Shown piece by piece: positions 5,623-56,296 of a stretch of 64,000 nucleotides of DNA. The stretch is from Chara braunii. Taxonomy: Eukaryota; Plantae; Charophyceae. The notes under the pieces were generated by a model that was not told the DNA's origin, did no database searches, and saw only the letters and a program-made list of their open reading frames with translations. The stretch is from contig BFEA01000023.1 in NCBI GenBank assembly GCA_003427395.1, positions 4,240,961-4,304,960 of the forward strand. The letters are read 5' to 3'. Made by a program: the position numbers and the translations under genes. Each line of letters opens with the position of its first letter. Within the stretch, counting starts at the first letter, position 1.

Positions 5623-6187
5623 GGGCATATTTTCGAAATGCCCCTGAAGTTTGCGTTTATTTGCGGCGTGCCCCTGTGAAGGCCGACTTACCCTGTTATG
5701 CCCCTCGGGCCTCTGAACTTTTCCGCAGGCCCCTGTCAGCACGGGGTGAACTTTCCGATATGCCCTTACTGGGCCGCTGGTTGCATTTCGTCGGCCCATC
5801 CTTGAAATGCCCTCACGAGGGGCACACATCTTTCTGTAATGCCCTTGAGAAGTGGTGGCAGTACTTCTAATTCGAAAATGGTAGGTACTTCATGTGTCTT
5901 CTTGGCGCCATCGCCGGTGCACTCGCACGTGTGTGTGTGTGTGTGTGTGTGTTCACGTCATCTGTGTGTGTGTGTTGTATGTGTGCGTGTGTGTGTGTGT
6001 GTGTGTGTTCACATCATCTTTCTCTTGTTGGTTGCTGTATGTGTGTGTGTGTGTGTGTGCGTGTCGTTATGTCCCTCCACTTTGACATTCTGGATGTATA
6101 GAGCGATCGTCGTGCATTCAACTTTGGAGCATCCGAATGTATCTGGTGCATTGACAACGCCAGACACATTCAGACATGGATGCATAG

Positions 6188-6276
<89 letters not shown>

Positions 6277-6399
6277 CACGCATGCCCACGGGTGTGTGTG
6301 AGAGAGAAAGAGAGAGGGGGCCCGGCTGTAGCTGCCCGCTCCTGCCTGGTCCCACCCGCAGCGACCTGCTACCACCCGCTCCCCCTGCCATCTCGCCCC

Positions 6400-6433
<34 letters not shown>

Positions 6434-7014
6434 NNNNNNNNNNNNNNNNNNNNNNNNNNNNNNNNNNNNNNNNNNNNNNNNNNNNNNNNNNNNNNNNNNN
6501 NNNNNNNNNNNNNNNNNNNNNNNNNNNNNNNNNNNNNNNNNNNNNNNNNNNNNNNNNNNNNNNNNNNNNNNNNNNNNNNNNNNNNNNNNNNNNNNNNNNN
6601 NNNNNNNNNNNNNNNNNNNNNNNNNNNNNNNNNNNNNNNNNNNNNNNNNNNNNNNNNNNNNNNNNNNNNNNNNNNNNNNNNNNNNNNNNNNNNNNNNNNN
6701 NNNNNNNNNNNNNNNNNNNNNNNNNNNNNNNNNNNNNNNNNNNNNNNNNNNNNNNNNNNNNNNNNNNNNNNNNNNNNNNNNNNNNNNNNNNNNNNNNNNN
6801 NNNNNNNNNNNNNNNNNNNNNNNNNNNNNNNNNNNNNNNNNNNNNNNNNNNNNNNNNNNNNNNNNNNNNNNNNNNNNNNNNNNNNNNNNNNNNNNNNNNN
6901 NNNNNNNNNNNNNNNNNNNNNNNNNNNNNNNNNNNNNNNNNNNNNNNNNNNNNNNNNNNAGAGGGGCACGCCGCAAATAAACACAAACTTCAGGGGCATT
7001 TCGAAAATTTTCCC
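5623..7014. mobile_element. Non-autonomous Mutator-like element inserted in the SINE poly(A) tail
   Basis: TIR GGGCATATTTTCGAAATGCCCCTGAAGTTTGCGTTTATTTGCGGCGTGCCCCT matches the reverse complement of 6962-7014 (3 mismatches in 53 bp). Flanked by A9 on both sides. Interior partly N gap. Confidence 0.8.
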
Positions 7015-7867
7015 AAAAAAAAAACACCAGTACTTCCAATGCACTTTTCTCGAGGGCTAGAAATGGTCTGTGCACCAAAAAACTGTGAACTGGTGCGGGC
7101 CTCCTTTTGGCTGGCATCGCCAGCCATTTTGCTCGGGAGGCTGAGCCTTGACAGATGCTGCGCGTCCCGAACCACAAACGAAAGAAACAATTGCGGTCCA
7201 TTCACCGGTCCATGCAGCGAACAGAATGGGTTGGGCCTAATTGCACCACAAAGGAAAATTGATGGGTTGGGCCTAATTGCACCACAAAGGAAAAGGATGC
7301 CCATCATTCACCGGTCCATGCAGCGAACAGAAAAAAAATGTCCGAATGCGGAGGTTGTGTTTTTTTTCGGCAATGTGCCTGTCAGATGGGATGTCAGAAT
7401 GAAATTGGGTAGACAGGCTAGGTTGTGTTTTTTTGGGAATGTAGGTTGTATTTTTTTGGCGATGACCCTTTTAGCCAACAAACGAGGTTGCATAGACAAG
7501 CTGTGGCCAACGACAGTCAGCCCGAACGGGCTGCAACTTGGTAAGAAGGCCCGAGTTGTACTAGGGGCTTACTTGTGTTACCAACTCGGTCGCCTGGGCC
7601 ACCGTCATTGCCTGGACGACTTGTTGGCAAGGGCCAGGGAAGGTCCCTGCGAGAAAAAAAATCCAAAAAAATATGGAAAAATGAACTGGACAACTTTTGC
7701 TGCAAGGTCGTGTGAGGGTTAGGATGGAAACATATGGGCATCAAAGGGGCTTCCAGGGGACGGGTGAAGGAGAGGTAGCAGGGGGGGGGGGAGAAAAGGG
7801 GTGCAGCTGGGGGGATGGTTGCGCTGATTGTGGGACGCCTGGGTCCAAAGCATACTCCCCCGGCTGG

Positions 7868-7905
7868 CTGTCTCTTATACACATCTAGATGTGTATAAGA
7901 GACAG
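7868..7905. other. Nextera mate-pair junction adapter (assembly contaminant)
   Basis: Exact CTGTCTCTTATACACATCT+AGATGTGTATAAGAGACAG (two Tn5 mosaic ends). Confidence 0.98.
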
Positions 7906-10065: not shown

Positions 10066-10879
10066 TTAAGGGACGTTGGGCGCGGTTCCCAGCACGTGCT
10101 GCTCCCCACGAGTGAATTGGAGCATTGCCCGCTCTTTTTTTTTTTTTGGTAAGGTGGCCATAGCACGATGCGTTCTGTTGGTGGGGAGCTCCACCTGCAG
10201 GAAGATGGGTCCAGCATTTGAGTTTTCGTGTGCTGAAATAAGGGCACAGACAAGATTTAGCCTTTCGTTTTCCCGCCTCCGTCATTGCACACTGTAGCAA
10301 ACCACAACTACACGTGTATGTGGGACCCAGGCCCCTGGTGGTGGCCCACAATCCTTTCCCGTCCAAATGCCCACGGTCTTTCCAGCCCATGAAGCAATAG
10401 GCTAGAAGCGAGGGCCACCGGCAACTGTTTGTTCTAATTTGCCTAACCTTTCTCTCTCCAGTGTCTCCACACATAATTGATATGGCAGATCTTTTCAGGC
10501 GACCCATTCATTTAGTGGCTGGGGCTCGCCGCTCCACTCACGGACTCGAAGTGTGCAAATTGAGAATGAATATTCCGCCAAAACATGGAAATATGCATCA
10601 CCATACTTTTTGTCTTCGGTGAGTTGTGCGGTGAGGCCCAAAAGCTTGCTGTCCTGGCTGTTGCACGACTCCAAAACTGAACTAACCCCCCCTTTTTTGG
10701 GACTTGGCTCTTAGCCTTCTGAACAAAATTCTTGAAACAGTACTTCACACCTTCACACCTTCGCGTGCTATGTACAATAGCTCCGATTTTTAATTCTACC
10801 TACTGCTGTAGCATACCATATCTGACAAATCAATCAATCAGCTAGTACAGTGTCATACTTTCTAGTTTTGTTTTTCCTT

Positions 10880-10911
<32 letters not shown>

Positions 10912-10944
10912 GGATGACTGTGTAAATTGAGAAATGGTCCAAAT
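10880..10944 (+). pseudogene. U6: U6 snRNA pseudogene, 5'-truncated with internal deletion
   Basis: TAAAATTGGAACGATACAGAGAAGATTAGCATGG-(deletion)-ATGAC...GAGAAATGGTCCAAAT followed by an A-rich tail. Confidence 0.9.
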
Positions 10945-13717
10945 AAAAAGAAGAAAAAGAAACACGCTTTTGCAGTTTATGCCTGGTGGAGTTTTAAATG
11001 GAGTTTGGTGGCGGCAGAGTTGTGTCAGTGGCCATGTCATTCAGGATCTGGTAGGCCCTCGCTCTTCACTTGCTGCGAGAAAAATTCCTGCCGTTCGATC
11101 TCTGAAACGTTTTTGCCCAGCAAGTGAAGAGGGCCAGGGCCTTGCAGGGCCTCTTCGCTTGTGGAGCGAAAAATTCCATCCTTGAGCTTGCTGAAAGTTT
11201 TCCTGATTCTGACCGCATTCAGGCCTGCTCTGGCGCCTTGTGCCTCGGCCGTGGTTGAGATGTCTTGGCCATGCACAGTGTGGGATCTTTCTGAAGCCTA
11301 CGTGAATAGACTGCATTTTAAACTCAGTGTGTGACTGTACTGCAATAACCTGTTTCTATTGAAAACCGGAACTGGTTTTTTGACACCAGCCATAGTTACC
11401 TCTCTTTTTGTCCTGCAGCAGTCTCATTTTTCTCTCTCTCTTTCTTTCTCTCTTTTTTTCCCTCTCTTTTCCTGACCTTCGTGGGTTTTTAGGAGACCTC
11501 CAGCTGTGCTTGCATTTTGAGGTGCCCGCCGCTGTCCAGGCTGGTGGACCAGGCTGGCGGATTTTGAGCACAGGGGAGGTTGAGGGTGTCGTTGTGTAAT
11601 CGGACTGGATGACCTTCCAGATGTGATTTGAGGAGTCTGGGCGAGTGGTTTGCGTATCCATGGGGGAGTACTGTGAGCCTGTTTTAGGAATGCTGTGAGC
11701 CTGAAAAGAGCAAGCAAAATAAATCACTGAGCCCATTGTCGGCCTTACACTACCACGTCCGTGCTTACCCAACTGTACATAGGGCCTCGCTGTACCACTC
11801 CACTATGTTTTCTCTTTTTTGAAGATTTTTCCCCACGCATAAACCACCCACTACCTCTCTCAGGCAAGCTTCTGCAACAAATTGGTTTAGTTCTGTGTTC
11901 TTGCTCTCGAAAACGAAAGATTACAGCGCCTGTTCGTATTGGACTTGTGCGCATAGCAGAAATCTGTCATGGGAAGAGAAGGACAGGAGGTAATCATGGT
12001 GGTTGTATAAACCCTCGCTGCACGTCTATGCTAAGCTGAACTCACAATGACACTTTTTGGTGAGTTCCTCACACCCGCACACACTCCCTTTCCATGAAGG
12101 TAGGCGAAATTACCATAAGGGCCTCGTTCCACTGCACAACGTGAGCATTGGTAATTGTATCTGGAGCTGGTAGGTAATTGTCTGGATATTTGGGATCAGC
12201 CCGAATGTACGGGTCCTGAGATAGGGTACAGAACAGATAAATGTCGAGTAGGGTACTTATGAATGTTGATTGTTGTGTAGTGGAGTGAGGCCCATACTCT
12301 CTGTTGTGGTGAGCATTTACCAGCCTCGGTGAGTTCCCACTGATTGTTTTTTCACCTTGATTGGTGAGATTGGGCCTCGCTGCACCACTCACAAATGTGA
12401 TGAAGCCAAAAACATGGCGCTTGGTTTTCCCAGTTGAAGCTGGAAATACATTCTGATTTTCACATTTGGTGAGTGTTGAGGCAAAGCCGGCAAGGCTGAT
12501 TATCTTTTATTTTGCGGAAACAAGTGCAGCCACGTCAGTTTTTGAGTTGCAGAAGGCAAAAAAAATACTCATGTTGGCAGGTCTGTTGCAGTGCCGCCAG
12601 TGCGAATTTCGAATGGGCAAAAAAAAGCGTAGAACGGCGGCCTGCACATCACGATCCCCCACCTGCAAAGAGCCTGACCTGCCTGTTTAGAAAGTTGTGT
12701 TTTTTATCGCCTTTTCAAACTCTGCACATAACTGACCTGCAGGTATGTGTTTGTTTTGCTCATTCAGAACTCGATCCTTAATGAAATGTACTTGCCCCTT
12801 TCCAAACTTGGCGCGTGACTGACCTGCAGGATTGTGTTGTTTTTGCCCATAATTCAGGGCTCGATCCTTGACGAAACATACTTGACCCCTTGTCTTAATC
12901 GATGAGATTATTGTAATCTCAGTTAGGGTGAGAGGTCTGTAGCCATGTGTCTCTAGGAGTTCCCAACATTTTGCCAGTGTACGCGCTCACCACACCGGGC
13001 GATAACTCTTTTTTCCCCGGGCGAGGAAATATACGTAGTCCAGCTTGGTTGCACCTTTCTACGCCTTTATGACCTTGTTCCCGTATTAAGAACGAGGGAA
13101 ACTATATGTGGTGCTCTCTATGTGGCAGTCATGGACACATCTGCGGTTACCTATGGCCAAATCTCGGTGGCTCCCCACCTGCAAAGTGCAGGATGGCTAA
13201 AAAGGACCATGGGGTGATTTCTGTAGCCATGTGTCTTGAGGAATTCCCAACATTTCTGCGTATCCACTTACCGCACCCTGAGATACCTACTTTTTCCCCA
13301 GACTGGGAGATATACATTGTCCAGCAGGGATGCACCTTAATACACCTTTATTTATAACCTTATCCTGAGACTGGGAGATATACTTAGTACAGCTGGGATG
13401 CACCTTTATATGCCTTTATAGCCTTTTCCCATTGTAAAGAGGGAAACCATATGCAGTCATGGACACATCTGGGGTTACCTATGGCCACATCTGGGATTAA
13501 CTATGGCCAGAAAAGACAGTGGTCACAGATGACATGCTGTCATGCTGACTGCAGGCAAGGACTAGACGGAAAAAATGAGTAGAGTCTGGAAGGAGTCACA
13601 TAGAGTCTGAGGACAGGACAAACCTTCAGTACTGCATTTGTGCCTTCGCAGGATGCGACACTGAAGGAGGACAGGACAGGACAGGACAAACCAGTACTTG
13701 TGACCCTGCCGAGCTAA

Positions 13718-14138: not shown

Positions 14139-14645
14139 TTAGAAATGCCCTGCACACCAAATACATTGAACTGGGCATTTTCTTTCTTTGCTGGTGCCGG
14201 CAGCCATTTAGCTCCAGTATGCCGCGCCCCGAAGGTCCTGGCACGTACACAGCTGGGTTTGAGAAAAATGGCTGGGAAGCCTACTGGTGGTTAAAGCAAA
14301 CAGCATGTGGGGGCACCCAACTTGTGAGGGTGACAACGGCAACCATTGTATGTGAGGACCACCCTGCTTTTATGATGCTCCATGTCTGACTATATCGGTG
14401 GGTAGCTGCACCTGCTGGAAAACGGGTGTCCAGCTTCCCACTATGGGCAATACATCACAACATCCTATTCACGTGTCTGATCCATCCTGCTACATCTGTT
14501 ATGTCAGTTTTTCTGTGACTGGACAGACTACTAAGTTATAGCTCGTTTGCCTCTTGCAGGGAGTTCTCGTTTGTGCTCTCTAGTGGTTACCAACTGCTAC
14601 GCACTACTGTCTTCCCACAAATGGAATCTGCAGTCATTGTTGCTG

Positions 14646-15697: not shown

Positions 15698-16774
15698 CCC
15701 GGGGAAACGAACCAAAAATGCGAGGGCCTGCTACCGGTAACTGCTCCCAGGCCAGGCTAGGGAACAGGCTAGGGAAAAAGAGCAGTACCACTACCGCCAC
15801 TGCCCGTTTTTGCCAATTATTGAGCCGGTAGGCCGTCGAATGCGTGATTTTGTCAGATTTACTATTTTTCGTGCAGTTTTTAACTGTACTTTGCCCAAGC
15901 TTGCAGTGGACTTGAGCTACACGTGCGTTGCGATAGGATTATTTTTTTGCGACGGAAAATTGTGAGGCTGCATGGCATTGACGAAATGAACGTACCTGGC
16001 AGTTTCATTCATCCAGTTTTGTGTACCACGTGGCAAGTCCCTAATCTGGGCGTAACTACAGTCAAATGCATACTAGAAAGTTTGTGTGTACTTCGCCGTT
16101 CTAGCATGTGTGCCCTTCGCCATTCTAGTATGCATGCCCTTCGCCTCTGTAATCTGTTCGCTGCAAATAAAGGCCTTCAAAGCGGGCCATGCACCACAGC
16201 GCATGTTTCTGAAATTGCAGTCCAGCTTGATGTCAATCCAGCCAAAAAGGTTATCGCTAGCCTACGGGTGAAGGCTTCACTGGTGGCAGGAGGTACACCC
16301 CCTCGAGAGGCAACGTTACCTGCCCGCCAAGCACTCCAAATGTCTCTTGCTCCTATGCTTAGGGGATACCCAGCTTAGGCTAGTGCTGGAAACCGGGTCC
16401 AGCGTCCCTGAGTTGCAAACTCTCAAAGAAAGAAAGAAACTGGACTAATAAAGATGATACACACTATTGCATAGTAATAAAGGAATGAATTCGAAACTTT
16501 TCTGCGTCTGGAAAGTTATCTGTAGACAGTGTAGAGCTAAATCCTGACACTGGAACTGGGTTTGACTGTGGGTTGCTATGGATGGGGTGAGTGCACTCTC
16601 CGGGGTATACCCTCAAACCACTAGCACTTTTCTTGTTCTACTTCGCCATTTTGATGTTGAAAATCTACGGAAAGAGTCCTTGTCTGAATATGTCCCCAAT
16701 CTAGCTACTCGTGGGGACTATCAGGGAATTGACCCATTTGTGAGACTGGACTGAAAAGCTGTAGGAAAGGTTAA

Positions 16775-24716: not shown

Positions 24717-26313
24717 TTAAATTAAGCTATGTTCTTCTCTCAATTTCACCTTTCACTACCTGCCTACCACTACTCCTAAGCCTGTACTCCCTCCCAGTAT
24801 AGCTACCTCTTACAATTAAGGGGATGCATGTTGCCCCCCCGTCCTAATCGGCGGTGGTCAGGGAGTAGGGCGAGGCCATCAGCAGGGGGGGGGGCTAAGG
24901 CAAAGACCGGGCATTTTGCCAGTAGCTGTGGCTCCCATCTGCTTCCCCCAACCCCATCGAGTAACAGCAGTGTCGATGCCCAGCACTGTCCCACACATCA
25001 CACACAACCCACACACAGACATACCCACACATCACACACATCACACACAGACATACGCACACCGTGACACCCGTGATGGCCAAAGACTGTAATGAACTGC
25101 TGCAGGCCCACCAAGGGGTGTTTGTTGCTCTGTGCCAGGAGAAGGGGGGGTCCCACCGTCTCGGGCCGAGTGTTGTTCCATTGGACCTCCCTCTCCGATC
25201 TTCTACTTTTTTCGGTGTTTTTTCTTTTGTTGTGTTTTTCGACGTCCTCTCTTCTAGTGCTACACTACTGGTGTTCCTACGGTAGTCATCACTTTCGTGA
25301 GCTGGGGTCCTCTCATCCAGTATCTAGGCTGTCTGAGGAGACTGCAGTGCTGAGCAAGGTTGTGTTCATTTTGCGTTATAATGTCTTCTACTACCTTCTT
25401 CGCCCGAATACAACGTATGGTCATTATAGCTGTATTTAGACTGAAAGATACCCCAGATACAGCTAGAAGGTAGGTGTTCCATAGGATGACAAATGCGGGA
25501 GCTTGGTGAATCTGATATCCGATACTGGTCATCATAACTCTTCCATCTCCCCTCCCTCACGCACACCTATCTTCGTTATGATTGGAAAAGGACCTTTCAC
25601 TCGTATGCACACCTATTCGGGAAGGCCGCCTTTTGTCTGGAAAAAGGTCTGCTTGGATATAGACGTTCCACAAGTGCGAAGAGTTTGATTACGGGGACAG
25701 CGGAATGGGCAGATTTGAAACAGTGAAAGAATACTCCTCACACGATCTGAACACACATGCAGAAGTATACCATAGTAGCTAATGCAATATATTGGAATCG
25801 GAAACAAGCATATCCATCTGATGTACCGGGTTGGCGTATACATGGGAACAAAGATCATTGGGCAGGGCTACCTGCGGCAAGCGATAAATGTTCTTCGTAA
25901 AAAGCAAGGGAGCGGATGCGCCATATTGGGAAGAGCTGGAAAAAACCTTTGGGGAATGGTTTATGCTTTGGAGGGCTAGAGGGAGACCTCTCGGGGCAAA
26001 TCTGTGAGGAGCGCCAACTGAGAATGACGGTGTCACGACTGGAGGACGGTAGTCCTGTGCGTAACAAGTGTTCACAGATTGGACATCGCAGCCTGGTTGG
26101 AATCGAGTTGATTGCCTCATTAGACACACTTGAATCATGAGCTGTAGCTGGTGAGTAGGGAGCACTCAGCACTGCAGGTTTCCAGAGTTATTGCGAATGC
26201 AGAACTTCACAGGGGAAGTGGGGCAAAAGTACAGATTTGGCACATGGGTTAGCACTTGGTCTGTCGCTTGTTTGAGCACAAGGGCTTTTGTATAGGGGGT
26301 GATGGAATATTAT

Positions 26314-26549
26314 CATACTTGCAAGCAGACGGACCGGCTGAGCGTCCGGTCTGGTCCGCTTCGCCGCGTGCGGCACCCTCCCCCCGGACCAGACGGACCC
26401 AGACCGGACCCGACGGGGGCGTTTTTTTTTTTTTTTTTTGGGGTGGGACGTAACTGGTCGTCGGGCGCACATTCGTGCGCCGCGCGGGTCCGGTCCGGCG
26501 GTCTGCCGCACGTGCGGAACCGCCCGGACGGTGTCCGCTTGCAAGTATG
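26314..26549. mobile_element. hAT-type MITE
   Basis: TIR CATACTTGCAAGC / GCTTGCAAGTATG; 8-bp TSD AATATTAT (26306-13 and 26550-57); CGGAC subterminal repeats. Confidence 0.9.
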
Positions 26550-26572
26550 AATATTATGCACTGCAAGATAAC

Positions 26573-26750
26573 CTTTTTAAAGTTTTTTTTCTTTTCTTCT
26601 TTTTTTTTTTTTTCCTCTTTTTTTTCCAGACAACCTGTGCGGGTGCTAGAGGTGGTGGTACAAGCAAACACCTCTAGCAGACCCGGGGATGCTCCATCTA
26701 TTAGTCGGGAGCTTCACCTGCTGGAGAATGGCTCCAGCGTCCCGGATACA
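26573..26750 (-). mobile_element. 3' end of a non-LTR retroelement (stem-loop plus poly(A))
   Basis: Poly(T) on +, then hairpin TGCTAGAGGTG...CACCTCTAGCA and the motif ctccatctatt..gggagcttcacctgctgga...tccagcgtccc. About ten related fragments occur in the window. Confidence 0.8.
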
Positions 26751-26761
26751 GAAGTACTCGG

Positions 26762-26836
26762 ATTTCCAATACCTACAGCGGCTCCAGCTAATGTGATTGT
26801 TGCACAGCCCGCTCCAATTAATTTTGCACCTTCTAG
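26762..26836 (-). pseudogene. atp9: NUMT: mitochondrial atp9 codons 2-26
   Basis: Minus-strand translation [25 protein letters not shown] matches the N-terminus of plant mitochondrial ATP synthase subunit 9 ([26 protein letters not shown]). Absent from the ORF track. Confidence 0.93.
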
Positions 26837-27528
26837 ACTGCAAGATTAACTACCAGTGAGAAATTCGTAATTGTGTTCTACCTTCACATACGTGGAACAT
26901 GCTTTTGGTGTAGCTATCCCGGCCGGGGGAGTTTGGCACATCAAGGGCACCCAACGGATGGATGATATGGGCAGTATATGTTCCGTTCAACCACCGGTAT
27001 CCCACCCACACATCGGCCTCGGGCTCATCAGCACGACTTTCAGAGGCCTGAATCGCGACAACGGCCGCCGATGAGGTTTATCAACGGCGGCCTGGCCCTG
27101 AAAGTTGCGGCCGTTGACGAGCCGCATCTCTGAAAAGTAGCTGGGAAATTAAGCACTCTCCACAGTCCCTCTGACCGTGCCGAGACTTTTGCCACCACTG
27201 GACATTCTGAAGGGACAATGCCGCGGAGGCGATTGGCCATGTTGGCTGTGCGAGTTGCGTGCTGCAGCGTCATCTCTGTGGTTGATGAACCAAAGCTATG
27301 TTTGTAGCCTTTCGGCATCGGTTGTGTTAGTGCAGTGGAGCCACACCCGTCGCTCATTGAGGGAGAAAGGAGAGACTCCTAGGATGTAAAGGAGTATCAG
27401 AGTCGTTGCTGGCAAGCCTGTCATGTGAATGGGGAGAAGGTGGCCAGCAGGAGAGGCACTCTTTTTGTGGGCCCTTGCCAACTCGACACTGGTTTGCTGC
27501 ACATAACAAAAGGGCTTGAACATGTCAA

Positions 27529-30948: not shown

Positions 30949-31071
30949 ATACCTTTCTCGGCCTTTTGGCTAAGATCAAGTGTAGTATCTGTTCTGATCA
31001 GTTTGATATCTGATCTGTGGTCCATCGGTATCGGTTCTGATCAGTTCATTATCTGATCCGTGGTCCATTGG
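30949..31071 (+). pseudogene. U2: U2 snRNA 5' fragment (~80 nt) with ~44-bp tandem duplication
   Basis: ATACCTTTCTCGGCCTTTTGGCTAAGATCAAGTGTAGTATCTGTTC is the plant U2 5' end with the branch-point recognition sequence GTAGTA. Sm site and 3' stem-loops are absent. Confidence 0.93.
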
Positions 31072-32179
31072 GCCTTGGCTGCTTCCAAGCCCACCTCCTG
31101 GTTGTAATTGCTCGATCACTTCCTTTCCCACTAAGTGATTGCTTTAGGACCTTAGCGTACGATCTGGGCTAGAAAAAAAAAAAAAAAAAGTACATATTCC
31201 AGGACCCTTGTAGTTACGCACCGCATGGAGGTTTCAATGTTATGGTGTGTTGAATAGTACTTCACCGATAATGGCAAAGTTAAATCCTGAATGTCACTTC
31301 CTTTTTTTTTTTTTCCAAAATATCGGGGCAGCGTCACTTGGGGGGGGTGATAAGAGCATCCTCCCCTGGTGCGCGATCTGGTTGTTCCATTCTATTGGTG
31401 GGGAGCTCCACCTGCTGGAAAACGGGTCCAGCGTCCCAAATGTACAATTGAGGAGAAGTAAGACAAGAGTAAGGTCAGTCTTGGCCGCCAGCACTAACTG
31501 CCCCGGCAAAGCCGGGGGGTTCACTGTGCAGCTGATCATCACAAGATTCTGTCCTGTCCAACCAGTGCTGTATTGCCGTTGGTGCCGTCAGAGTGGTGCC
31601 CGCCGCCTGGTCTCCGGAGGGGCACTGGAGGCCGGGCTGCTCTGCAGCTTGTCCTTAGGGCCGTGTGAGCTCAGGGTACGGGGGGGAATGAGATGTGTGG
31701 AAACTGTAGGGAAAAGGTTTGAAAATCAAAATCGGAGAACAGAAAGGTGCGACCTTCATATCATCAAGGGGGGGCCGAGGCAGACAACACTAGAGGGTAC
31801 CCATCAACTGGCTGTCAGTCTGTCATTTTCTCAACCAGGGCGAGCGGGTGTGGTGGGAAGGGGTCCAAAAAAAGTCGGATGGGGGGCGCAGTGTTGGGGT
31901 CTATAGTCGTTTCGTCATTTAAAATAAGGCGGTAATCCCTGCACTCCGCCAGCTCCCCTGGCTGCACATCGTCCTTGTCCCCCCCCCAACTCCACTTTCG
32001 CTATCCATCCTCCCCTACTATTCCTAACCATTCTTTACAAAAGGAGGGGAGAGTGCTCACCTGATATCCTTATTTGTCCGAAAGAGGTCCAGCAGTTGGG
32101 GTTTCAGCACCTGCCATCTTCTCATAATTTTATTAATTAATTTAATTTAATTAATTAATTAATTTATTTATTTGCTGTT

Positions 32180-39439: not shown

Positions 39440-40144
39440 TGTGCCCTCTTTTTCCGTTCCTGCACTGGAAGTTGTTGACAAATGACTGTTGCGAATTCGT
39501 CAAAAAATGAGGAAGCAGGCGATTAAGGAATGGATAATTGCAAAAAAAACTTTAAAAAAGAACCAAAAAAAGGGAAAAAAAAAGGAAAAAAAAAAAAAAG
39601 GAAAAAGAAGGAATGGAGAAATGCATGTCAACTCTATAATGGACTTCTTTGGAATATTGTGCGGCTTCCACTAACCATTGTCGCTTGGCCAAAATGGGCC
39701 AAAATGGGCCAAAATGGCCAAGCGGAAAGGGTAACAGTGTCGTAAGACTCGTAACACACTTGTGGGGACATGACTTCAAAGTTCTTTCCGCTTGCCCATT
39801 TTGGCCCATTTTGGCCTTGGCCATTTTGGCCCTCGTAATGTAGAGGAACAGTTTGTTGTGGTGTGCGCACACGAAACAGGGATGGGGATGGTACTCCACT
39901 GCTGCAGAACTACAGACAGCTGGAATATAGCCCTTCGACATATCCCTGTATCGTTCGTCTCCGTCTATCTATTGTCACTGACGCGGATTATACACAGGCA
40001 CAGCGCAAACGAACGCAATATGTGGAGAGGGGAAAGGGACTTGTCGGGACACAGACTGAAGAGGGGACAATGGTTTGGCCTATGGGTGAAGCTCAGAACT
40101 GAGTTTTGTTTTTTTCTTTCTTTTTTTTTCCCTTTTTTGCGGGG

Positions 40145-40264
40145 GGACCATTTCTTGATTTATGCGTCTCATCCTTGAGTGTGCAGGGGCCATGCTAATT
40201 AGTAATTACTAATTATCCTTCTCTGTATTGTTCCAATTTTATTTTAACGGATGTCCCGAAGGAC
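40145..40264 (-). pseudogene. U6: Full-length U6 retrocopy with poly(A) and TSD
   Basis: Whole U6 on minus with small insertions; poly(T) on + at ~40104-40138; TSD GTGAAGCTCAGAACTGA (40086-40102) / GCAAAGGTCAGAACTGA (40265-40281) abutting the U6 +1 G. Confidence 0.92.
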
Positions 40265-40559
40265 GCAAAGGTCAGAACTGACAACTTACACGGTTACCCT
40301 CCCCTTTTTTTTATGTTTTTCATTAACTTCAGACGTAGATGCCCGAAGGACGCGAAGGTCAGAACTGACAACTTACACCCACTTACACCCCCTTACACCC
40401 CCTTACACCACCTTACACCCCCTTTTTTGGTGTTTTTCATTTACATCAGACGTAGATGCAACAGGGGGGTTGATACGAGCCTACCCCGGTAGCCACTTTT
40501 CATCAGATGCCTCCTCCTGTCTATTGGTTGGGAGCATCGCCTGCTAGAACAGACAAACT

Positions 40560-47465: not shown

Positions 47466-47610
47466 TTTTTTTTTTTTTTGAAAGAAACGCGCCCACCAGT
47501 GTTAGTGGTGCTGGTAAGAGCAGACACCACTAGCACCTGCTGGGGAGAGGCTCCATCTATTGGTTGGGAGCATCACCTGGTGGAAAGCGGGTCCACCGTC
47601 CCTTATACAG
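47466..47610 (-). mobile_element. 3' end of the stem-loop retroelement
   Basis: Poly(T), hairpin TGTTAGTGGTG...CACCACTAGCA, and the shared ctccatctattgg..gggagc motif. Confidence 0.8.
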
Positions 47611-48717
47611 ACTGAATTTGGAGTACATCAACTGAATTTTGGGAGTACATCAGAAAAAATTATGGAGTGTTCCTGCCAGCATTGATTGCCCTGGGATCCA
47701 CGGGATTGACTGAGCAGGCTATTGGAAAGAAGGGGGAACCTCTTCACCCTGCATTTGGCGCCGGATACACAGCTACACGCTAGCTCCTCCCTCCCCCTAA
47801 GCCATACTGAAATCATACTAGCATCTCCCCCCCTTTTAATCTCCGGACGCCCCCATCATTCTCAGGAGGCTCCATCTATTGGTGGGGAGCGGCACCTGCT
47901 GGCATTCTTGGCAAACAGAGATAGAGATGTTCTCCTACAGGCCTTCTATCGTGACGTACCCCGGAGCTGTACTTACACGCCCGCCGAGCGGCCTATTGAA
48001 GATCCCTAAACCGCTGGGCATGCTGCCGTCCTGCCAGCATTGATTACCCGCAGGAGTGAAATATTAACTTTCTCGTTTTCACCATTCACCGTCCTCCTCC
48101 TCCCTTTTCTTCTTCTTCTTCTTCTTCTTCGTCGTCGTCGTCGTGGTTGTCGTCGTCATCGTCGTCGTCTTCCATGTGCCCCGTCTTTCAATAATTCGAT
48201 AATGATATAGGAATTTAGGAAATTAATGTTATTGTTATTATTATAGTAAAATTGAAGCTCACTTAAGCAGTCGGGATGATAGTCTGGTCTCAGTACCTCC
48301 ATGTCTGTCTTGTCACTCTTAGTCTTCTCTGCTTGTGATCAGATGGCTACCGTTTTCACCCGAATAGACTGGGCAGGCGGGCGGGGAGCGAGCACATCTG
48401 GGTATTGATATCCGTCTTTCTGGCGCTGCCAGTTGTAAATGGGTACAAGGAGCCGAGTGATGTGCCTGCTGACTTTTTCTGAGGCAGTATCCTCCGGGGG
48501 GGGGGGGGGAAATCCCAGGCTGGGTATCGATATCAATCTTTTCTTTCCCTTCTGGGCCGGGGGTGGAATATATACATGGAATATACATTCTTTCTGGCAC
48601 TGCCAGTTGTAAATGGGTGCAGGGAGCCAAGTGTTGTGTGGGTTTTCACTTTGCTCCAGGAGCTGTTCGGCTTGGCCATGATGGTGCTGTCGGTGCTGCT
48701 TCGCTGTCGCCATATTG

Positions 48718-49642: not shown

Positions 49643-49740
49643 GTCCTTTGGGACATCCGCTAAAACTGGAACGGTACGGAGAAGGAAGATTAGCATGGCC
49701 CCTGCACAACGATGACACGCACAAATCGAGAAATGGTCCA
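49643..49740 (+). pseudogene. U6: Full-length diverged U6 retrocopy with poly(A)
   Basis: GTCCTTTGGGACATCCGCTAAAACTGGAACGGTACGGAGAAGGAAGATTAGCATGGCCCCTGCACAACGATGACACGCACAAATCGAGAAATGGTCCA plus an A tail. The ACAGAGA box is mutated, so it is likely non-functional. Confidence 0.92.
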
Positions 49741-50483
49741 CAAGAGAAAAAAAAAAAAAAAACCTCCATACTGCCACCAGGCATCACCACAAGCGGAACA
49801 TAGCAGCAGGCAACGACTCAGCGAAGCACCAGGCAACGCTGCCGGGGCAACCCAACTGCAAAGCGCCATGGGCATCGCTAACTGCATGGAACGACAGTGT
49901 AAGCAGACGGGCAGCATGGCAGCAACACAGCGAAGCACAAGGCGACACTGCCAACCAGCCAAACCACACGGCACATGAGCAAAGTGCACACGAAGACAAG
50001 GCACACAGATGGGCAGCAAGGCAACAATGCAGCGGAGCTCAAGGAAACGCCAACAACGCAGCCAAACTACACGGGAACACACCAGCTGCAAAGAGCGCCA
50101 TGGGGGGTAAGCGGTATGGGCAGCGAGGAAGCTTTGGAGCTTAGACAAGGCAGTAAACATATCCAACACGGAGGAAAGCAATACATCACCTACTCACACC
50201 ACAAGTGAACGCCGCAGACTGGTGGTCCCAACCAGTCGCTGAGCCGGGGAGTCACTGTGACGAGCATCCATCATCACCCATAGGTCACACATCCATCCTG
50301 AACCAAGCAGTGCCCCTAATAATGCAGCAGGCACTCCAAACGAGGAACGACCAACCATTTGGCTCTTAGAGGTGCTCACTTAAACGCGCAAAAAGAAAAA
50401 TAATAGAAGCAAAAGAGAGAAAAAACAGGAAGGAAGACAGACAAAAAGACATATATCAAACTCTGTGTGTGTGTGTGTGTGTG

Positions 50484-50521
50484 CTGTCTCTTATACACAT
50501 CTAGATGTGTATAAGAGACAG
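50484..50521. other. Nextera mate-pair junction adapter (assembly contaminant)
   Basis: Exact 38-bp CTGTCTCTTATACACATCTAGATGTGTATAAGAGACAG. Confidence 0.98.
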
Positions 50522-53466
50522 CTGTAGGCCCGTGTGGCTACGCAGTATGCCACACAGACACAGGATGGAAGAGGGGAGGTACTGACTCCGATCACTTGCA
50601 GACAGACACAGGATGGNNNNNNNNNNNNNNNNNNNNNNNNNNNNNNNNNNNNNNNNNNNNNNNNNNNNNNNNNNNNNNNNNNNNNNNNNNNNNNNNNNNN
50701 NNNNNNNNNNNNNNNNNNNNNNNNNNNNNNNNNNNNNNNNNNNNNNNNNNNNNNNNNNNNNNNNNNNNNNNNNNNNNNNNNNNNNNNNNNNNNNNNNNNN
50801 NNNNNNNNNNNNNNNNNNNNNNNNNNAGCATTGATTGCTCCAACATCGTGGAGAATTGACTGTCAGCTTGCCCTGCTTCCTCCTTTCCTCTCAGGACTTC
50901 TATAAGCACCTGTCAAATACAATCATGAAAAGCAAGAAAGGTCTGTGAAGCTACAACTGCTACCAATTCTATCTAACCCCTGAGCCCCGCATATGAGCCT
51001 CGTAAAATCCCTGGCATTCCTTTTTTTTTTGTTTTTTTTTCCGTAAGAAGCGAGTTACATCGATATACACACGCATGCTCCTTTCCGTCTGGCCGAAGGG
51101 TCCCTGAACAGCATTGATTGCTCCACCGATGTGGAGGATTGACTCTTGCCTTTCCCTGGACTTCCTCTCAAGCTCCTCTATAGGGGCCTGTCAGATATGC
51201 AAGTTCCGGCTTTTATCTCCCGAGCCGACCTCGGAGGTGCTCCTCTATAGGGGCCTGTCAGATATGCATGTATTTCAAGAAAACCAGAGAACCTATCTCA
51301 GTGGCTTGACACTGGAGACTCATATATCCCTGTAGTCCTGTTGTCCAGTCTGCAAAGAAACTCGTGTTCTTTGGGGAGCCTCTGAGTTGTGTCATCCCTT
51401 CCATTGGATTTGCAGAGCATCAATATCCGTTATCTTCCCATTGACGAGCCACCCCCTCCTGAACTTGGATATTGTTTCTCGTTGCTCCTCCGGATTCTGC
51501 TGAATTTGGAGTTTGACTTTCTTCCATTGGCACCGGATATCAGTTTCCGTAAGGAGTTCGGCTGATGCCCAGACTTGCTCCGCCTGATTGTTAGACTTGT
51601 CAATAGTTCTGTTACACCTCTCTTTCCAGATGACCCAGAGAGTCACCTTCCTGATTATTCCAAACCAGATGCGTTCAGACTTATGGGAAGGGATGTTAGT
51701 CCACAGGAGTAGTTTGATCGGGTGTTCAGGTAGGGGAGAAGGAAAGAGGTAGTCCCAGAGTGCTGAGGCTCTCGGCCATATGTCAGTAGCAAACTTGCAG
51801 GATATCAGGCAATGTATTAGGTCCTCCCGTTGGTTTTCTGAACACACCAGGCATTGTTCTGAGCTGTTTAAGTCGCTGTGTTTCCTTCGGATGTGTAACC
51901 ATACGTTCACTGGGAGGGCATTGTAGGTGATTAACCATTGCAGGCTTCCGATTTTGACTGGCCGAATAGATTTGTGTTTGCGCCAGGGGAGTTCAGCGAT
52001 TGGTTCCATTCTCTGTCCTAGCAATTTGGACCCGCGTTCTCTGATTACTGGCTCTGGATCCTTCGGTTTCAGTAGCATCCTGTAACCCATTTTAACCGTG
52101 TACTGTGTTATCTGAATGGGAGTCTTGCAGAATCTGTTGTTTCCTGAGAGCCACGCCCATTCCTTTGGGTCAAATTCCAGGTCCTGAATCGCTGTGTTCA
52201 CTTGGAATATTGTTTTCGGCCAAGTTCCCAATACTCTTATTTTTCGGAGCGTGTAAGTGCTGAGGGTTATCTCTTGAGGGTCGATATTGTAAATCAGAAG
52301 CGAGTTAGGGTTGGTACGGTCTATGGGGAAAAAAGTGAATATTCCTAAGAGGTCTGAGCTCGGGGATCTGCGGAAGAACTGGTATGNNNNNNNNNNNNNN
52401 NNNNNNNNNNNNNNNNNNNNNNNNNNNNNNNNNNNNNNNNNNNNNNNNNNNNNNNNNNNNNNNNNNNNNNNNNNCCCCCCTGCAGTGCTGGTGCTGCTGA
52501 TAAGAGCAGACAACACTAGCACCCGGGGGAAGGCTCCATCTGTGTTCACTTGGAATATTGTTTCCGGCCAAGTTCGCAATACTCTTATTTTTCGGAGTGT
52601 GTAAGTGTTGAGGGTTATCTCTTGTGGATCGATATTGTGAATTAGAAGCGAGTTAGGGTTGGTACGGTCTATGGGGAAATAAGTGAATATTCCTAAGAGG
52701 TCTGAGCCCGGCAATCTGCAGAAGAACTGGTATGCTTTCTCAGGGACGGACTCCTGAGTCAGCACTCCCCATTCTCCTGATTTCCATGAAAAGTCGTCCT
52801 TTAACAGATCTTTCCATCCTTCAGGGACGCTGTTTACAATCGTTGTCAGATTTTCCTTCTGAATTTTGTGGCATCCTTTTAAAAGATGTCTCAGTTGTTC
52901 CTCATTGATCCAGTCTTTCCTTACGTCGTCCCAGATGTGGTCTACCCTCCACACTCCGTTTCTGATCCATGACAGCCAGCGTTGGTCGTTGGCCAGGGGC
53001 AGAGGTAAGCCCCCAGCATCCCTTACACATGGGTTTCCGAATAGGGGCTGGCGAAGAACTTCTTCTTTGGATCTGGGCTTTGTCACTTTATTGGGCCTGA
53101 TTCCTCTCCAGACTCTGATCAGGGCTGTCCAGTAAGGTGCTGGGGGTTGGTCATGGATCTGTTGTGCGTTCAGCATTGATGAAAGTATGATGAGGGTTGA
53201 CAATGCCATTTCAAGAAACCATGTCCCGTATCTGTCTCACCTCCTTACCTTGAGTCCCGAGTCCTACATGAGTGTACCTATAAAGCCTGCTATTCTACTG
53301 ACTACCTCCTCCCTTGCCTGTTCCAGGATGTTTGCATATAAGGACGAGTAGGGGTCACTTGAGAGGTTGGCCTCGACGATCTTTAGAGTCATTTCAAGCG
53401 CTTGTTTCCTTTGTTTTCAATCGTTGGCTAGCTTCCGGGATAATTGGGCAACTGATTGGGATAAAG

Positions 53467-54904
53467 CATACTTGCGGCGCATCGACCCCGTGCGCTGCGC
53501 GGTGCGCGGACCCGAGGTGCACGCGCACCGGCGCATGCCGCGCACCTGGGTGTGCGGTGCACGATGTGTGATGCGCTGCGCACAGGGCTGGTGCTCGGCG
53601 GGTGCGCTGGGGGGTGCGCGCTGCAGGCCGCATATGCGCCAGGTGCGCACAGCATATATATATATATATATATATTTTCATTTTTATGTTGAACTGAACG
53701 TTGAGAGAGAGAGAGAGANNNNNNNNNNNNNNNNNNNNNNNNNNNNNNNNNNNNNNNNNNNNNNNNNNNNNNNNNNNNNNNNNNNNNNNNNNNNNNNNNN
53801 NNNNNNNNNNNNNNNNNNNNNNNNNNNNNNNNNNNNNNNNNNNNNNNNNNNNNNNNNNNNNNNNNNNNNNNNNNNNNNNNNNNNNNNNNNNNNNNNNNNN
53901 NNNNNNNNNNNNNNNNNNNNNNNNNNNNNNNNNNNNNNNNNNNNNNNNNNNNNNNNNNNNNNNNNNNNNNNNNNNNNNNNNNNNNNNNNNNNNNNNNNNN
54001 NNNNNNNNNNNNNNNNNNNNNNNNNNNNNNNNNNNNNNNNNNNNNNNNNNNNNNNNNNNNNNNNNNNNNNNNNNNNNNNNNNNNNNNNNNNNNNNNNNNN
54101 NNNNNNNNNNNNNNNNNNNNNNNNNNNNNNNNNNNNNNNNNNNNNNNNNNNNNNNNNNNNNNNNNNNNNNNNNNNNNNNNNNNNNNNNNNNNNNNNNNNN
54201 NNNNNNNNNNNNNNNNNNNNNNNNNNNNNNNNNNNNNNNNNNNNNNNNNNNNNNNNNNNNNNNNNNNNNNNNNNNNNNNNNNNNNNNNNNNNNNNNNNNN
54301 NNNNNNNNNNNNNNNNNNNNNNNNNNNNNNNNNNNNNNNNNNNNNNNNNNNNNNNNNNNNNNNNNNNNNNNNNNNNNNNNNNNNNNNNNNNNNNNNNNNN
54401 NNNGGAGGGGAGAGAGAGAGGGGCTAGTGGTTACCCACCTGGCAACTTTACGAGCTGAAGCCGCGCTCCTCCCGCTGCTTTTTCGGCTCCTTCAGGAAGA
54501 CTGTAGTGCCTTGGCTATGGCTGGACAATGACGCCTTCGACTGCTGCTGCTGCACAGGAGACGTGGAGGCAACGGGCAACGCACGGCGGGCGCGAAGGGC
54601 ACAAAGCTGGACTACCGGGGTTCATCCACGCAGCGAGGGGCAGCACTCGGGATTCGAAACTTCGAAAAACAAACCAACTTCAGCTCCCCCCCCTTTTTTT
54701 TTCGGGGCCCCGCGCGGCCTCAAATTGTTGTTGTTTTCTTTTTTTGTTTCATGACGCGACATCCCACTCGAGCCTACAAAACCCCTCCCCAAGTTTTTTT
54801 TTTTTTTGTCGACCCCTTATTTTCGGGGNGCGCCGCACCCCGTGCGCGGTGCCCGGTGCGGCGCACGTGCGGGATGCCGCGCACCTTAATGCGCCGCAAG
54901 TGTG
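53467..54904. mobile_element. Non-autonomous hAT element nested in the LINE
   Basis: TIR CATACTTGCGGCGCAT / ATGCGCCGCAAGTGTG; 8-bp TSD GGATAAAG (53459-66 and 54905-12); GTGCG subterminal repeats. Confidence 0.9.
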
Positions 54905-55819
54905 GGATAAAGTTAGGTAGATTTTTTGGAACCATTGCCATCTGTCCTGACCATCTAGGAATGAGTTTCTAGCGTTGAGCCAGCATTCCTGTATCTTTTT
55001 CCTGAATATCTGGCTTAGGAGTAAGGAGTTGTTCAGTTTGTGGAAACTGGCTCCTTTTGTGATGTATTGGTCGAAGCACAGAATTAATTCGATGGGTTTG
55101 TGGTCGAGCCCCCCGTAGGGAGCAAGTGGCAAGATGTCGGCTTCCTTAATAGCCCCCATCATTGACTCTGAGGCTAAGAAATAATCGATCCTAGAGAAGG
55201 CTGTGTGATGGGCATGGTTTTTCTTCACGAGGGAAGAAGCCTTTACACCTGGGTGGACCGTTCGGAAAGGGTCAATCAGGCTATGGTCCATCATCAATTG
55301 GATGATCGGGGTTGCTTCTTGGAAGGATTGTTGTGAGGTGGCTCTAGAAATTTTGTCATTGCAGGGCTCGAGAGTCGCGTTCCAGTCTCCCGCTATGATG
55401 CACGAGGAAAAAGGTGTGATTAGGTGCCCCACTGTCAGCAAGAACGTTGACCTTTCTGTCACATTATTGGGTGCGTAAATGTTGATGATTCTCAAGTCTT
55501 CCTCTTTCCATTTCAGGTCCATCCAGCACCACCTTTCCGTCTTGATGTCTGCCTCTCTACCTGTCACTGTTCCTGTTGAGTAAAAACGAGAGGATTTCGG
55601 TATCATAATGGTTGTACCTTTAGTACTGGACCTATTATATGTGGCCCATATTTCGTCCTTAACACCTCTCATTTTCCTTGTGAAAAACTTCCTTATCTTT
55701 TGATGTTTTTCGGAGTTGGTCGTGTGTGTTTCCTGCAAGAGGATGATATCAACTGGCTTGTTGGATGGGTCTTTTAGTCCCTTTATTATGTCGTTCAGCT
55801 TGTCTTCTTTGGTGCTAAT

Positions 55820-56296
55820 CATGGCTACCGCGGACCCGGACACCGGACCGATCCGGACCCAGACAACCAGTCGGTCAGGATATGATCCGGACGTTCGGAT
55901 TTCCGGACCAGTCCGGACCGTCCGGACATGGTCCGGATCAGTCTGGATGGTCCGGATGATAACGTCCGGATCGGTCTGGATTTAAAAAAAAGAAAAAGAA
56001 AAAAACTCCCTGGTCTCTTATGCATGTTGAATGCAGTTTCATCGTGTAACCGTGACTTAAGGGTAAGTGTTCCAGGAAGACATAGTTGTTGGCATATATG
56101 ACAAGCATGAATGATCATTGCTTGACATGCACTGTGCTGGCACAGTCACTGCAAAGCACAAACTGCTGCAAGCGAAGAAAAAGTGAAGAAACAAAAAAAA
56201 AACACTCCGCAGTAAACCTTTGTAAAGATAAATATTAAATGAAGTTCAAGACTTTAGCAGTTCATAATTTAAAGTTGAAAATTTGAAGTCCGAGTT

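Follow-up and report, generated by a model that had tools for sequence, protein, structure and literature searches.

Chimeric insertions that join U6 snRNA to L1 sequence were reportedly described by Buzdin in 2002-2003, and are said to arise by template switching or RNA ligation. Other LINE-1 chimeras carry 3'-truncated U5 or U3 partners (PMC4476161) or internal fragments of 28S rRNA, 50-482 nt long and in sense orientation in 83% of cases (PMC11838501); the literature takes this orientation as the signature of template switching or RNA ligation (PMC11838501, PMC4476161). Template jumps by a LINE also gave rise, outside animals, to the MINE and tripartite chimeric retrogenes of Magnaporthe grisea (PMC2104539). 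NUMTs, as the original prediction for the locus described here had stated, are generally ascribed to DNA capture (PMC2567098). A link between retrotransposons and NUMTs in mammals is suspected from statistics only (PMC3467031), and an RNA/L1 route has been proposed for human NUMTs that are retrocopies of mitochondrial RNAs (RetroSeeker, PMC11727581).

The locus lies in a window of 64 kb (the whole stretch of Chara DNA that we analysed). It has the structure of a U6/L1-type chimera, the likeness that had been predicted: a foreign 5' piece that reads in sense runs straight into the 3' part of a 5'-truncated, A-tailed retroposon, and a single target-site duplication (TSD) surrounds the two. LINE-1 chimeras likewise have one TSD round both parts (10-20 bp in their case), and their U5, U3 and 28S rRNA partners are internal or 3'-truncated pieces too. 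The 5' partner is where they part company, since here it is an organelle-encoded sequence and there a nuclear small RNA, an rRNA or an mRNA. In addition, our single known locus sits in a charophyte alga, and its retroposon is something other than L1 proper. The chimeras of Magnaporthe grisea share with ours a setting outside animals, but the RNA drawn into them (WEIRD) is nuclear and non-coding, and they make up a family of many copies, whereas the junction found here is single-copy (PMC2104539).

Two kinds of NUMT also invite comparison. The retro-NUMTs of RetroSeeker combine, like this locus, a NUMT with a TSD and an A-tail, and an RNA route from organelle to nucleus was proposed for them; there, however, the mitochondrial RNA is the primary template and brings its own poly(A) (PMC11727581). 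We rejected a retrocopy of that type here: the mitochondrial piece lacks an A-tail of its own, CC and the retroposon body come next, and the A-tail is that of the retroposon. Classical NUMTs (PMC2567098) and those adjacent to retrotransposons (PMC3467031) resemble our locus in being short, near-identical mitochondrial fragments beside a retroposon, but a classical NUMT has neither a TSD nor an obligatory orientation relative to the neighbouring element, while here the TSD encloses NUMT and retroposon together. Our searches of the open-access literature turned up neither a LINE chimera with organelle RNA as its 5' partner nor any account of NUMTs in Chara.

Structure and authenticity of the locus

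Read 5' to 3' on the minus strand, the chimera is laid out as follows.

26850-26837, minus: upstream TSD copy, GTTAATCTTGCAGT, with one inserted A relative to the downstream copy
26836, minus: C, extra or mismatched, separating TSD and atp9 piece; mitochondrial contigs have T here in their loose letters (...ATG TTA GAA...)
26835-26762, minus: piece of atp9 exon 1, 74 nt, sense, nt 5-78 of the CDS from the ATG TTA start
26761-26760, minus: CC at the internal junction, probably of neither partner (alignment to the family copy at 47481-47625)
26759-26626, minus: 3' end of a 5'-truncated non-LTR (LINE-dependent) retroposon, about 134 nt, structured and G+C-rich (by likeness to a second copy)
26691-26743, minus: conserved 53-nt 3' module (GGGACGCTGG...ATAGATGGAGC), defined by read depth and six further copies in the window
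26644-26679, minus: long terminal hairpin with an 11-bp perfect stem, of a low-copy subfamily (inverted repeat and RNA folding)
26625-26573, minus: A-rich tail, 53 nt, broken by a few G and by CTTT
26572-26560, minus: downstream TSD copy, GTTATCTTGCAGT

The original prediction stated that direct repeats differing by one indel enclose exactly this chimera, and every element that it listed is present on the minus strand. The repeats, of 13 and 14 nt, bound the chimera exactly. If one edit is allowed, the 13-mer still has no further counterpart in the window, whichever strand is read. When the 600 nt upstream were shuffled 20000 times, a match of this quality turned up in only 12 of the shuffles, counted at any place and not just at the atp9 border. 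The direct repeat is more than a chance match. The insertion target (...GGTA/GTTAATC...) is not TT/AAAA-like, a motif that may not be the preferred one of this alga's LINEs.

The atp9 piece has the same orientation as the A-tail, and only CC stands between it and the retroposon. A linker of about 10 nt had been proposed at this place, which did not hold up: in a gapped alignment to the copy ending at 47611, most of it is probably retroposon sequence, and 1-2 bases are left. The alignment to the family copy (47481-47625) is firm as far as 26749-26752, then weaker and gapped (10-nt gap) as far as 26759. The stretch belonging to neither partner thus probably measures 1-2 nt, and about 10 nt at most should the gapped alignment be wrong. 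One or two extra C are found at both junctions of the atp9 piece. Between the two parts the locus shows no A-tail and no second duplication; it has no retroposon sequence upstream of the atp9 piece, and atp9 does not resume past the A-tail.

Independent contigs were assembled from the raw reads of two DNA samples of the same organism, X1 and X3. One X1 contig covers 26629-26791 without mismatch at single-copy depth (13.4, against 11.7 for the flank); another, of depth 11.7, covers 26806-27100, again without mismatch, and is matched by an X3 contig of depth 17.6. With both junctions crossed by independent read contigs, the locus is confirmed as a real single-copy chimera. It is scarcely credible that we are dealing with an assembly artefact or a chance resemblance: although two mate-pair junction adapters, one close to an N gap, remain in the assembly of this window, contigs from the raw reads of two samples traverse the junctions at single-copy depth, and the atp9 match and the duplication are each far beyond chance. 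The adapter remnants, at 7868-7905 and 50484-50521, are exact copies of a 38-nt palindromic sequence (CTGTCTCTTATACACATCT + AGATGTGTATAAGAGACAG), the second about 100 nt from the run of N at about 50616-50826. Since library adapters were left in the assembly there, the joins near these two places are not to be trusted.

Identity of the atp9 piece

The sequence at 26835-26762 (minus strand) is identical at 73 of 74 positions to a sequence found at organelle-level depth in the reads of the same organism. Contigs over 26759-26839 have depths of 13-26 thousand in X1 and 5-11 thousand in X3; the single-copy flank (26840-26974) stands at 11.7 and 17.6, respectively, and the near-identical sequence is present at 600-2300 times single-copy depth. 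The ratio of its depth to single-copy depth differs 3.6-fold between the two samples, as against 1.2-1.3-fold for neighbouring nuclear repeats. Such a shift in relative depth between samples points to the organelle genome as the source of the abundant sequence.

Translated, the piece reads (L) followed by 24 residues, the N-terminus of mitochondrial ATP synthase subunit 9. Its PDB matches are mitochondrial ATP synthase subunit c in 16 of 17 cases. The sole match in a search for homologues among proteins of up to 75 aa was the mitochondrial atp9 of the streptophyte alga Mesostigma viride, which carries PF00137 and is identical to the piece at 23 of 25 positions, an unusual Cys included. An atp9 of streptophyte-algal type agrees with Chara braunii as the source of the DNA. 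A Pfam search with the 25-aa piece alone, which is too short for it, returned no match.

Only one common difference separates the nuclear copy from the abundant sequence: 26794 T>C, where the nuclear copy encodes Thr and the abundant sequence the canonical Ala. The ends of the single-copy unitigs at 26791 and 26806 fit an identity over exactly 26762-26835, if words of 31 letters are assumed. Past 26835, in sense, the loose letters of the abundant contigs read ...AAGAAGATGGCTATGT, then TAGAAGG, and supply the start codon or codons; judged from these upstream letters, the mitochondrial protein may begin with MAMLEG.... These details touch the original reading of 26836-26762 as atp9 codons 2-26 in sense orientation. 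The identity and the orientation stand, base 26836 mismatches the mitochondrial sequence and has to be dropped, and the codon numbers may shift by two. Near-identity to the organelle sequence, together with a nuclear setting (single-copy depth of the flank 26840-26974 and of the junction contigs), identifies the atp9 piece as mitochondrial sequence of the organism itself, that is, a NUMT.

The retroposon tail and its family

A retroposon 3' end with a stem-loop and poly(A) had been predicted, and the tail does belong to a repeated family, with a hairpin and an A-rich end. The copy at 47499-47611 is 77% identical to it over 113 nt, hairpin included, and ends in an A-tail as well. The long stem is kept in this second copy through a change on both sides (GAGG/CCTC versus GTGG/CCAC), and RNA folding gives the same three-hairpin layout in both sequences. 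A Rfam search of 26540-26870, with E up to 1, returned no match, so that the tail corresponds to no described RNA family.

Read depth divides the tail in two. Over the hairpin part (26624-26677) the depth is no more than 95-417, corresponding to some 8-30 copy equivalents. The 53-nt module, with loose ends precisely at both borders, reaches 27-76 thousand, so that its copy equivalents in the reads number in the thousands; its letters are GGGACGCTGG...CCAGCAGGTG.AGCTCCC.AC.AATAGATGGAGC. Six more copies lie in the window, three of them followed, after a variable stretch, by A13-A14 tails.

26691-26743, minus: module copy of the chimera
47550-47602, minus: module copy
31385-31437, minus: module copy
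10174-10215, minus: module copy
47865-47905, minus: module copy
14400-14439, minus: module copy
16384-16408, minus: module copy

All seven are on the minus strand (two-sided chance about 0.016). A covariation count over them found helix 1 paired in 94% of cases, with one both-sided change, in a structure line that is partly out of register because of gap columns. The module seems to be a common 3' recognition domain of several retroposon families in this genome.

In the copies at 47499-47611 and 31437, at least 100 nt of the unit come before the module, compared with 16-18 nt in the chimera, which identifies the tail as a truncated copy. We conclude that the tail is a genuine 5'-truncated end of a repeated retroposon family. 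The ORFs upstream of the second family copy contain no reverse transcriptase domain, and no autonomous partner LINE was found in the window.

The window also contains a degraded L1-like LINE at 51392-55843 (minus strand), whose domains are zf-RVT and, below the Pfam cut-off, one of endonuclease type (Exo_endo_phos_2). We considered this element as the autonomous partner and rejected it: its own A-tailed 3' end, at about 51020-51040, is different, and it shares only a 13-nt motif with the second family copy.

A probable single insertion event

Did the two parts arrive together? The absence of an A-tail and of a second duplication between them rules out two successive retropositions, and the lack of upstream retroposon sequence and of atp9 after the A-tail rules out an insertion into a larger NUMT. 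Two further arrangements were rejected. A NUMT of a mitochondrial region that already held the tail does not agree with the low depth of the hairpin part, nor with the A-tail bins, which are next to empty. Nor do we see a family of atp9-headed retroposons, since the contig over the junction stands at single-copy depth and atp9 is missing from the second copy of the family. Both parts very probably entered in one event of target-primed reverse transcription.

The possibility that the parts come from two unrelated events is highly improbable. An old truncated retroposon with its TSD would then have suffered, later, a double-strand break at its 5' junction, repaired with a fragment of mtDNA. Retroposons fill much of this genome, so NUMTs will sometimes land in or beside them, but the break would have had to fall within a few bases of the border between TSD and element and to spare 13-14 bp of duplication, and retroposon sequence is absent upstream of the atp9 piece. 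Nearly as improbable is a chimeric read-through transcript, from a source locus where a NUMT lay upstream of a truncated retroposon, which was retroposed here and truncated within atp9. A stringent 3' recognition domain, such as the conserved module suggests, would mobilise any RNA ending in it, and retroposons are plentiful in the genome. However, this scheme requires two earlier independent events side by side, and the contig spanning tail and atp9 is at single-copy depth (13.4 versus 11.7), which leaves no identical source copy, although a diverged or lost one is possible.

There is about an even chance, in our judgement, that a LINE-type enzyme made the whole insertion in a single event of target-primed reverse transcription and passed from the retroposon onto atp9 RNA. 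Reverse transcription would start on the A-tail of the retroposon RNA at a staggered nick, the stagger giving the 13/14-bp duplication. The enzyme would copy about 135 nt, that is, the structured 3' domain with the hairpin and the 53-nt module, leave the retroposon template, add 1-2 untemplated bases and continue on mitochondrial atp9 RNA, from nt 78 back to nt 5. It may have jumped onto this template; an RNA ligated beforehand would have the same outcome. One further base would then be added and the cDNA joined to the upstream target end, the product being a sense-oriented atp9/retroposon chimera, or a small NUMT formed via RNA. The extra C at both junctions weakly fits untemplated addition at template ends. 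Both the reverse transcriptase origin of the two parts and the RNA nature of the atp9 template are inferences.

Copies of other RNAs are found in the same window: three of U6 and one of U2, all with A-rich tails.

49643-49747 (+), 10855-10948 (+), 40137-40267 (-), 30949-31119 (+): U6 and U2 snRNA copies

These A-tailed copies show that the local LINE machinery copies templates other than mRNA. The U6 copy at 40137-40267 (minus strand) is flanked by a 10-bp duplication, TCAGTTCTGA. The U2 copy is internally duplicated and carries about 53 additional nt ahead of its A18 tail, and could itself be a chimera.

RNA or DNA as the source of the atp9 piece

An RNA origin of the atp9 piece is plausible, and capture of DNA would produce the same structure at this locus. 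Template switching or prior RNA ligation is assigned to LINE chimeras on features also seen here: a 5' partner in sense, without its own A-tail, and short extra bases at the junctions. We know of no RNA editing in charophyte algae, Chara included. Because the piece lies wholly in exon 1, ending at nt 78, and no editing is known, its 74 nt hold nothing that would discriminate RNA from DNA.

No known RNA terminus coincides with nt 5 or nt 78, where the piece begins and ends. Chara mitochondrial mRNAs, that of atp9 included, are processed and partly polyadenylated (PMC8003010). Two hypotheses that would have tied the ends of the piece to such transcripts were ruled out from work on this system: the 5' end of the piece is not that of the mRNA, whose 5' UTR ends at -56/-93 in Chara vulgaris (PMC8003010), and the CC is not the relic of a poly(C) tail, Chara having no polycytidylation (PMC8003010). 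Oligo-dT RNA reads gave almost no atp9 signal, in a type of library that would miss most mitochondrial RNA anyway.

Could DNA have been captured in the course of the same insertion? A free 74-bp fragment of mtDNA would have been end-joined between the 5' end of the truncated cDNA and the upstream target, and we hold this to be somewhat unlikely. End-joining at breaks is the classical way in which NUMTs are made (PMC2567098); mammalian NUMTs are over-represented beside retrotransposons, and it has been suggested that they enter at breaks cut by the L1 endonuclease (PMC3467031); and the 1-2 extra bases at both junctions suit end-joining equally well. The RNA route, on the other hand, predicts the sense orientation, which DNA capture would give in 50% of cases, so that the orientation weighs for RNA by a factor of only about two. 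A limited literature search gave no example of a LINE insertion with mtDNA captured at its 5' junction.

A transfer through RNA remains our preferred reading of the locus, and it may have a wider reach. It is possible, and we suggest it tentatively, that LINE reverse transcriptases of this charophyte jump onto fragments of mitochondrial RNA, that part of its NUMTs are made via RNA and that this locus is one of several. Chara mitochondrial genes contain many introns (those of atp9 in the Charales are at nt 145 and 214; PMC10012718), so a chimera running across an exon-exon junction would prove the RNA route.

Should the atp9 piece be captured DNA, the locus would still document the intermediates of retroposon insertion as entry points for NUMTs. 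The RNA route would matter for a longer-standing question. Nugent and Palmer, in 1991, are said to have inferred RNA-mediated transfer of genes from organelle to nucleus in plants from edited, intron-less nuclear copies. To our knowledge, neither an enzyme nor a mechanism of integration has been tied to this transfer in plants. A LINE chimera carrying organelle RNA would provide both, in a member of the plant lineage.

Neighbouring elements

An ORF of 627 aa, at 5839-7722, has no Pfam match. Long ORFs in several other reading frames, of either strand, overlap it, and this suggests a biased or repetitive sequence more than a gene. A separate element, a MITE at 26313-26550, starts 9 nt past the downstream TSD of the chimera. 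Its terminal inverted repeats measure 18 nt and its palindromic interior is rich in G+C; it also has an internal A/T run and a TAATAT-like duplication. Its depth in the DNA runs is 20-36 thousand, and it is found in the RNA reads too.
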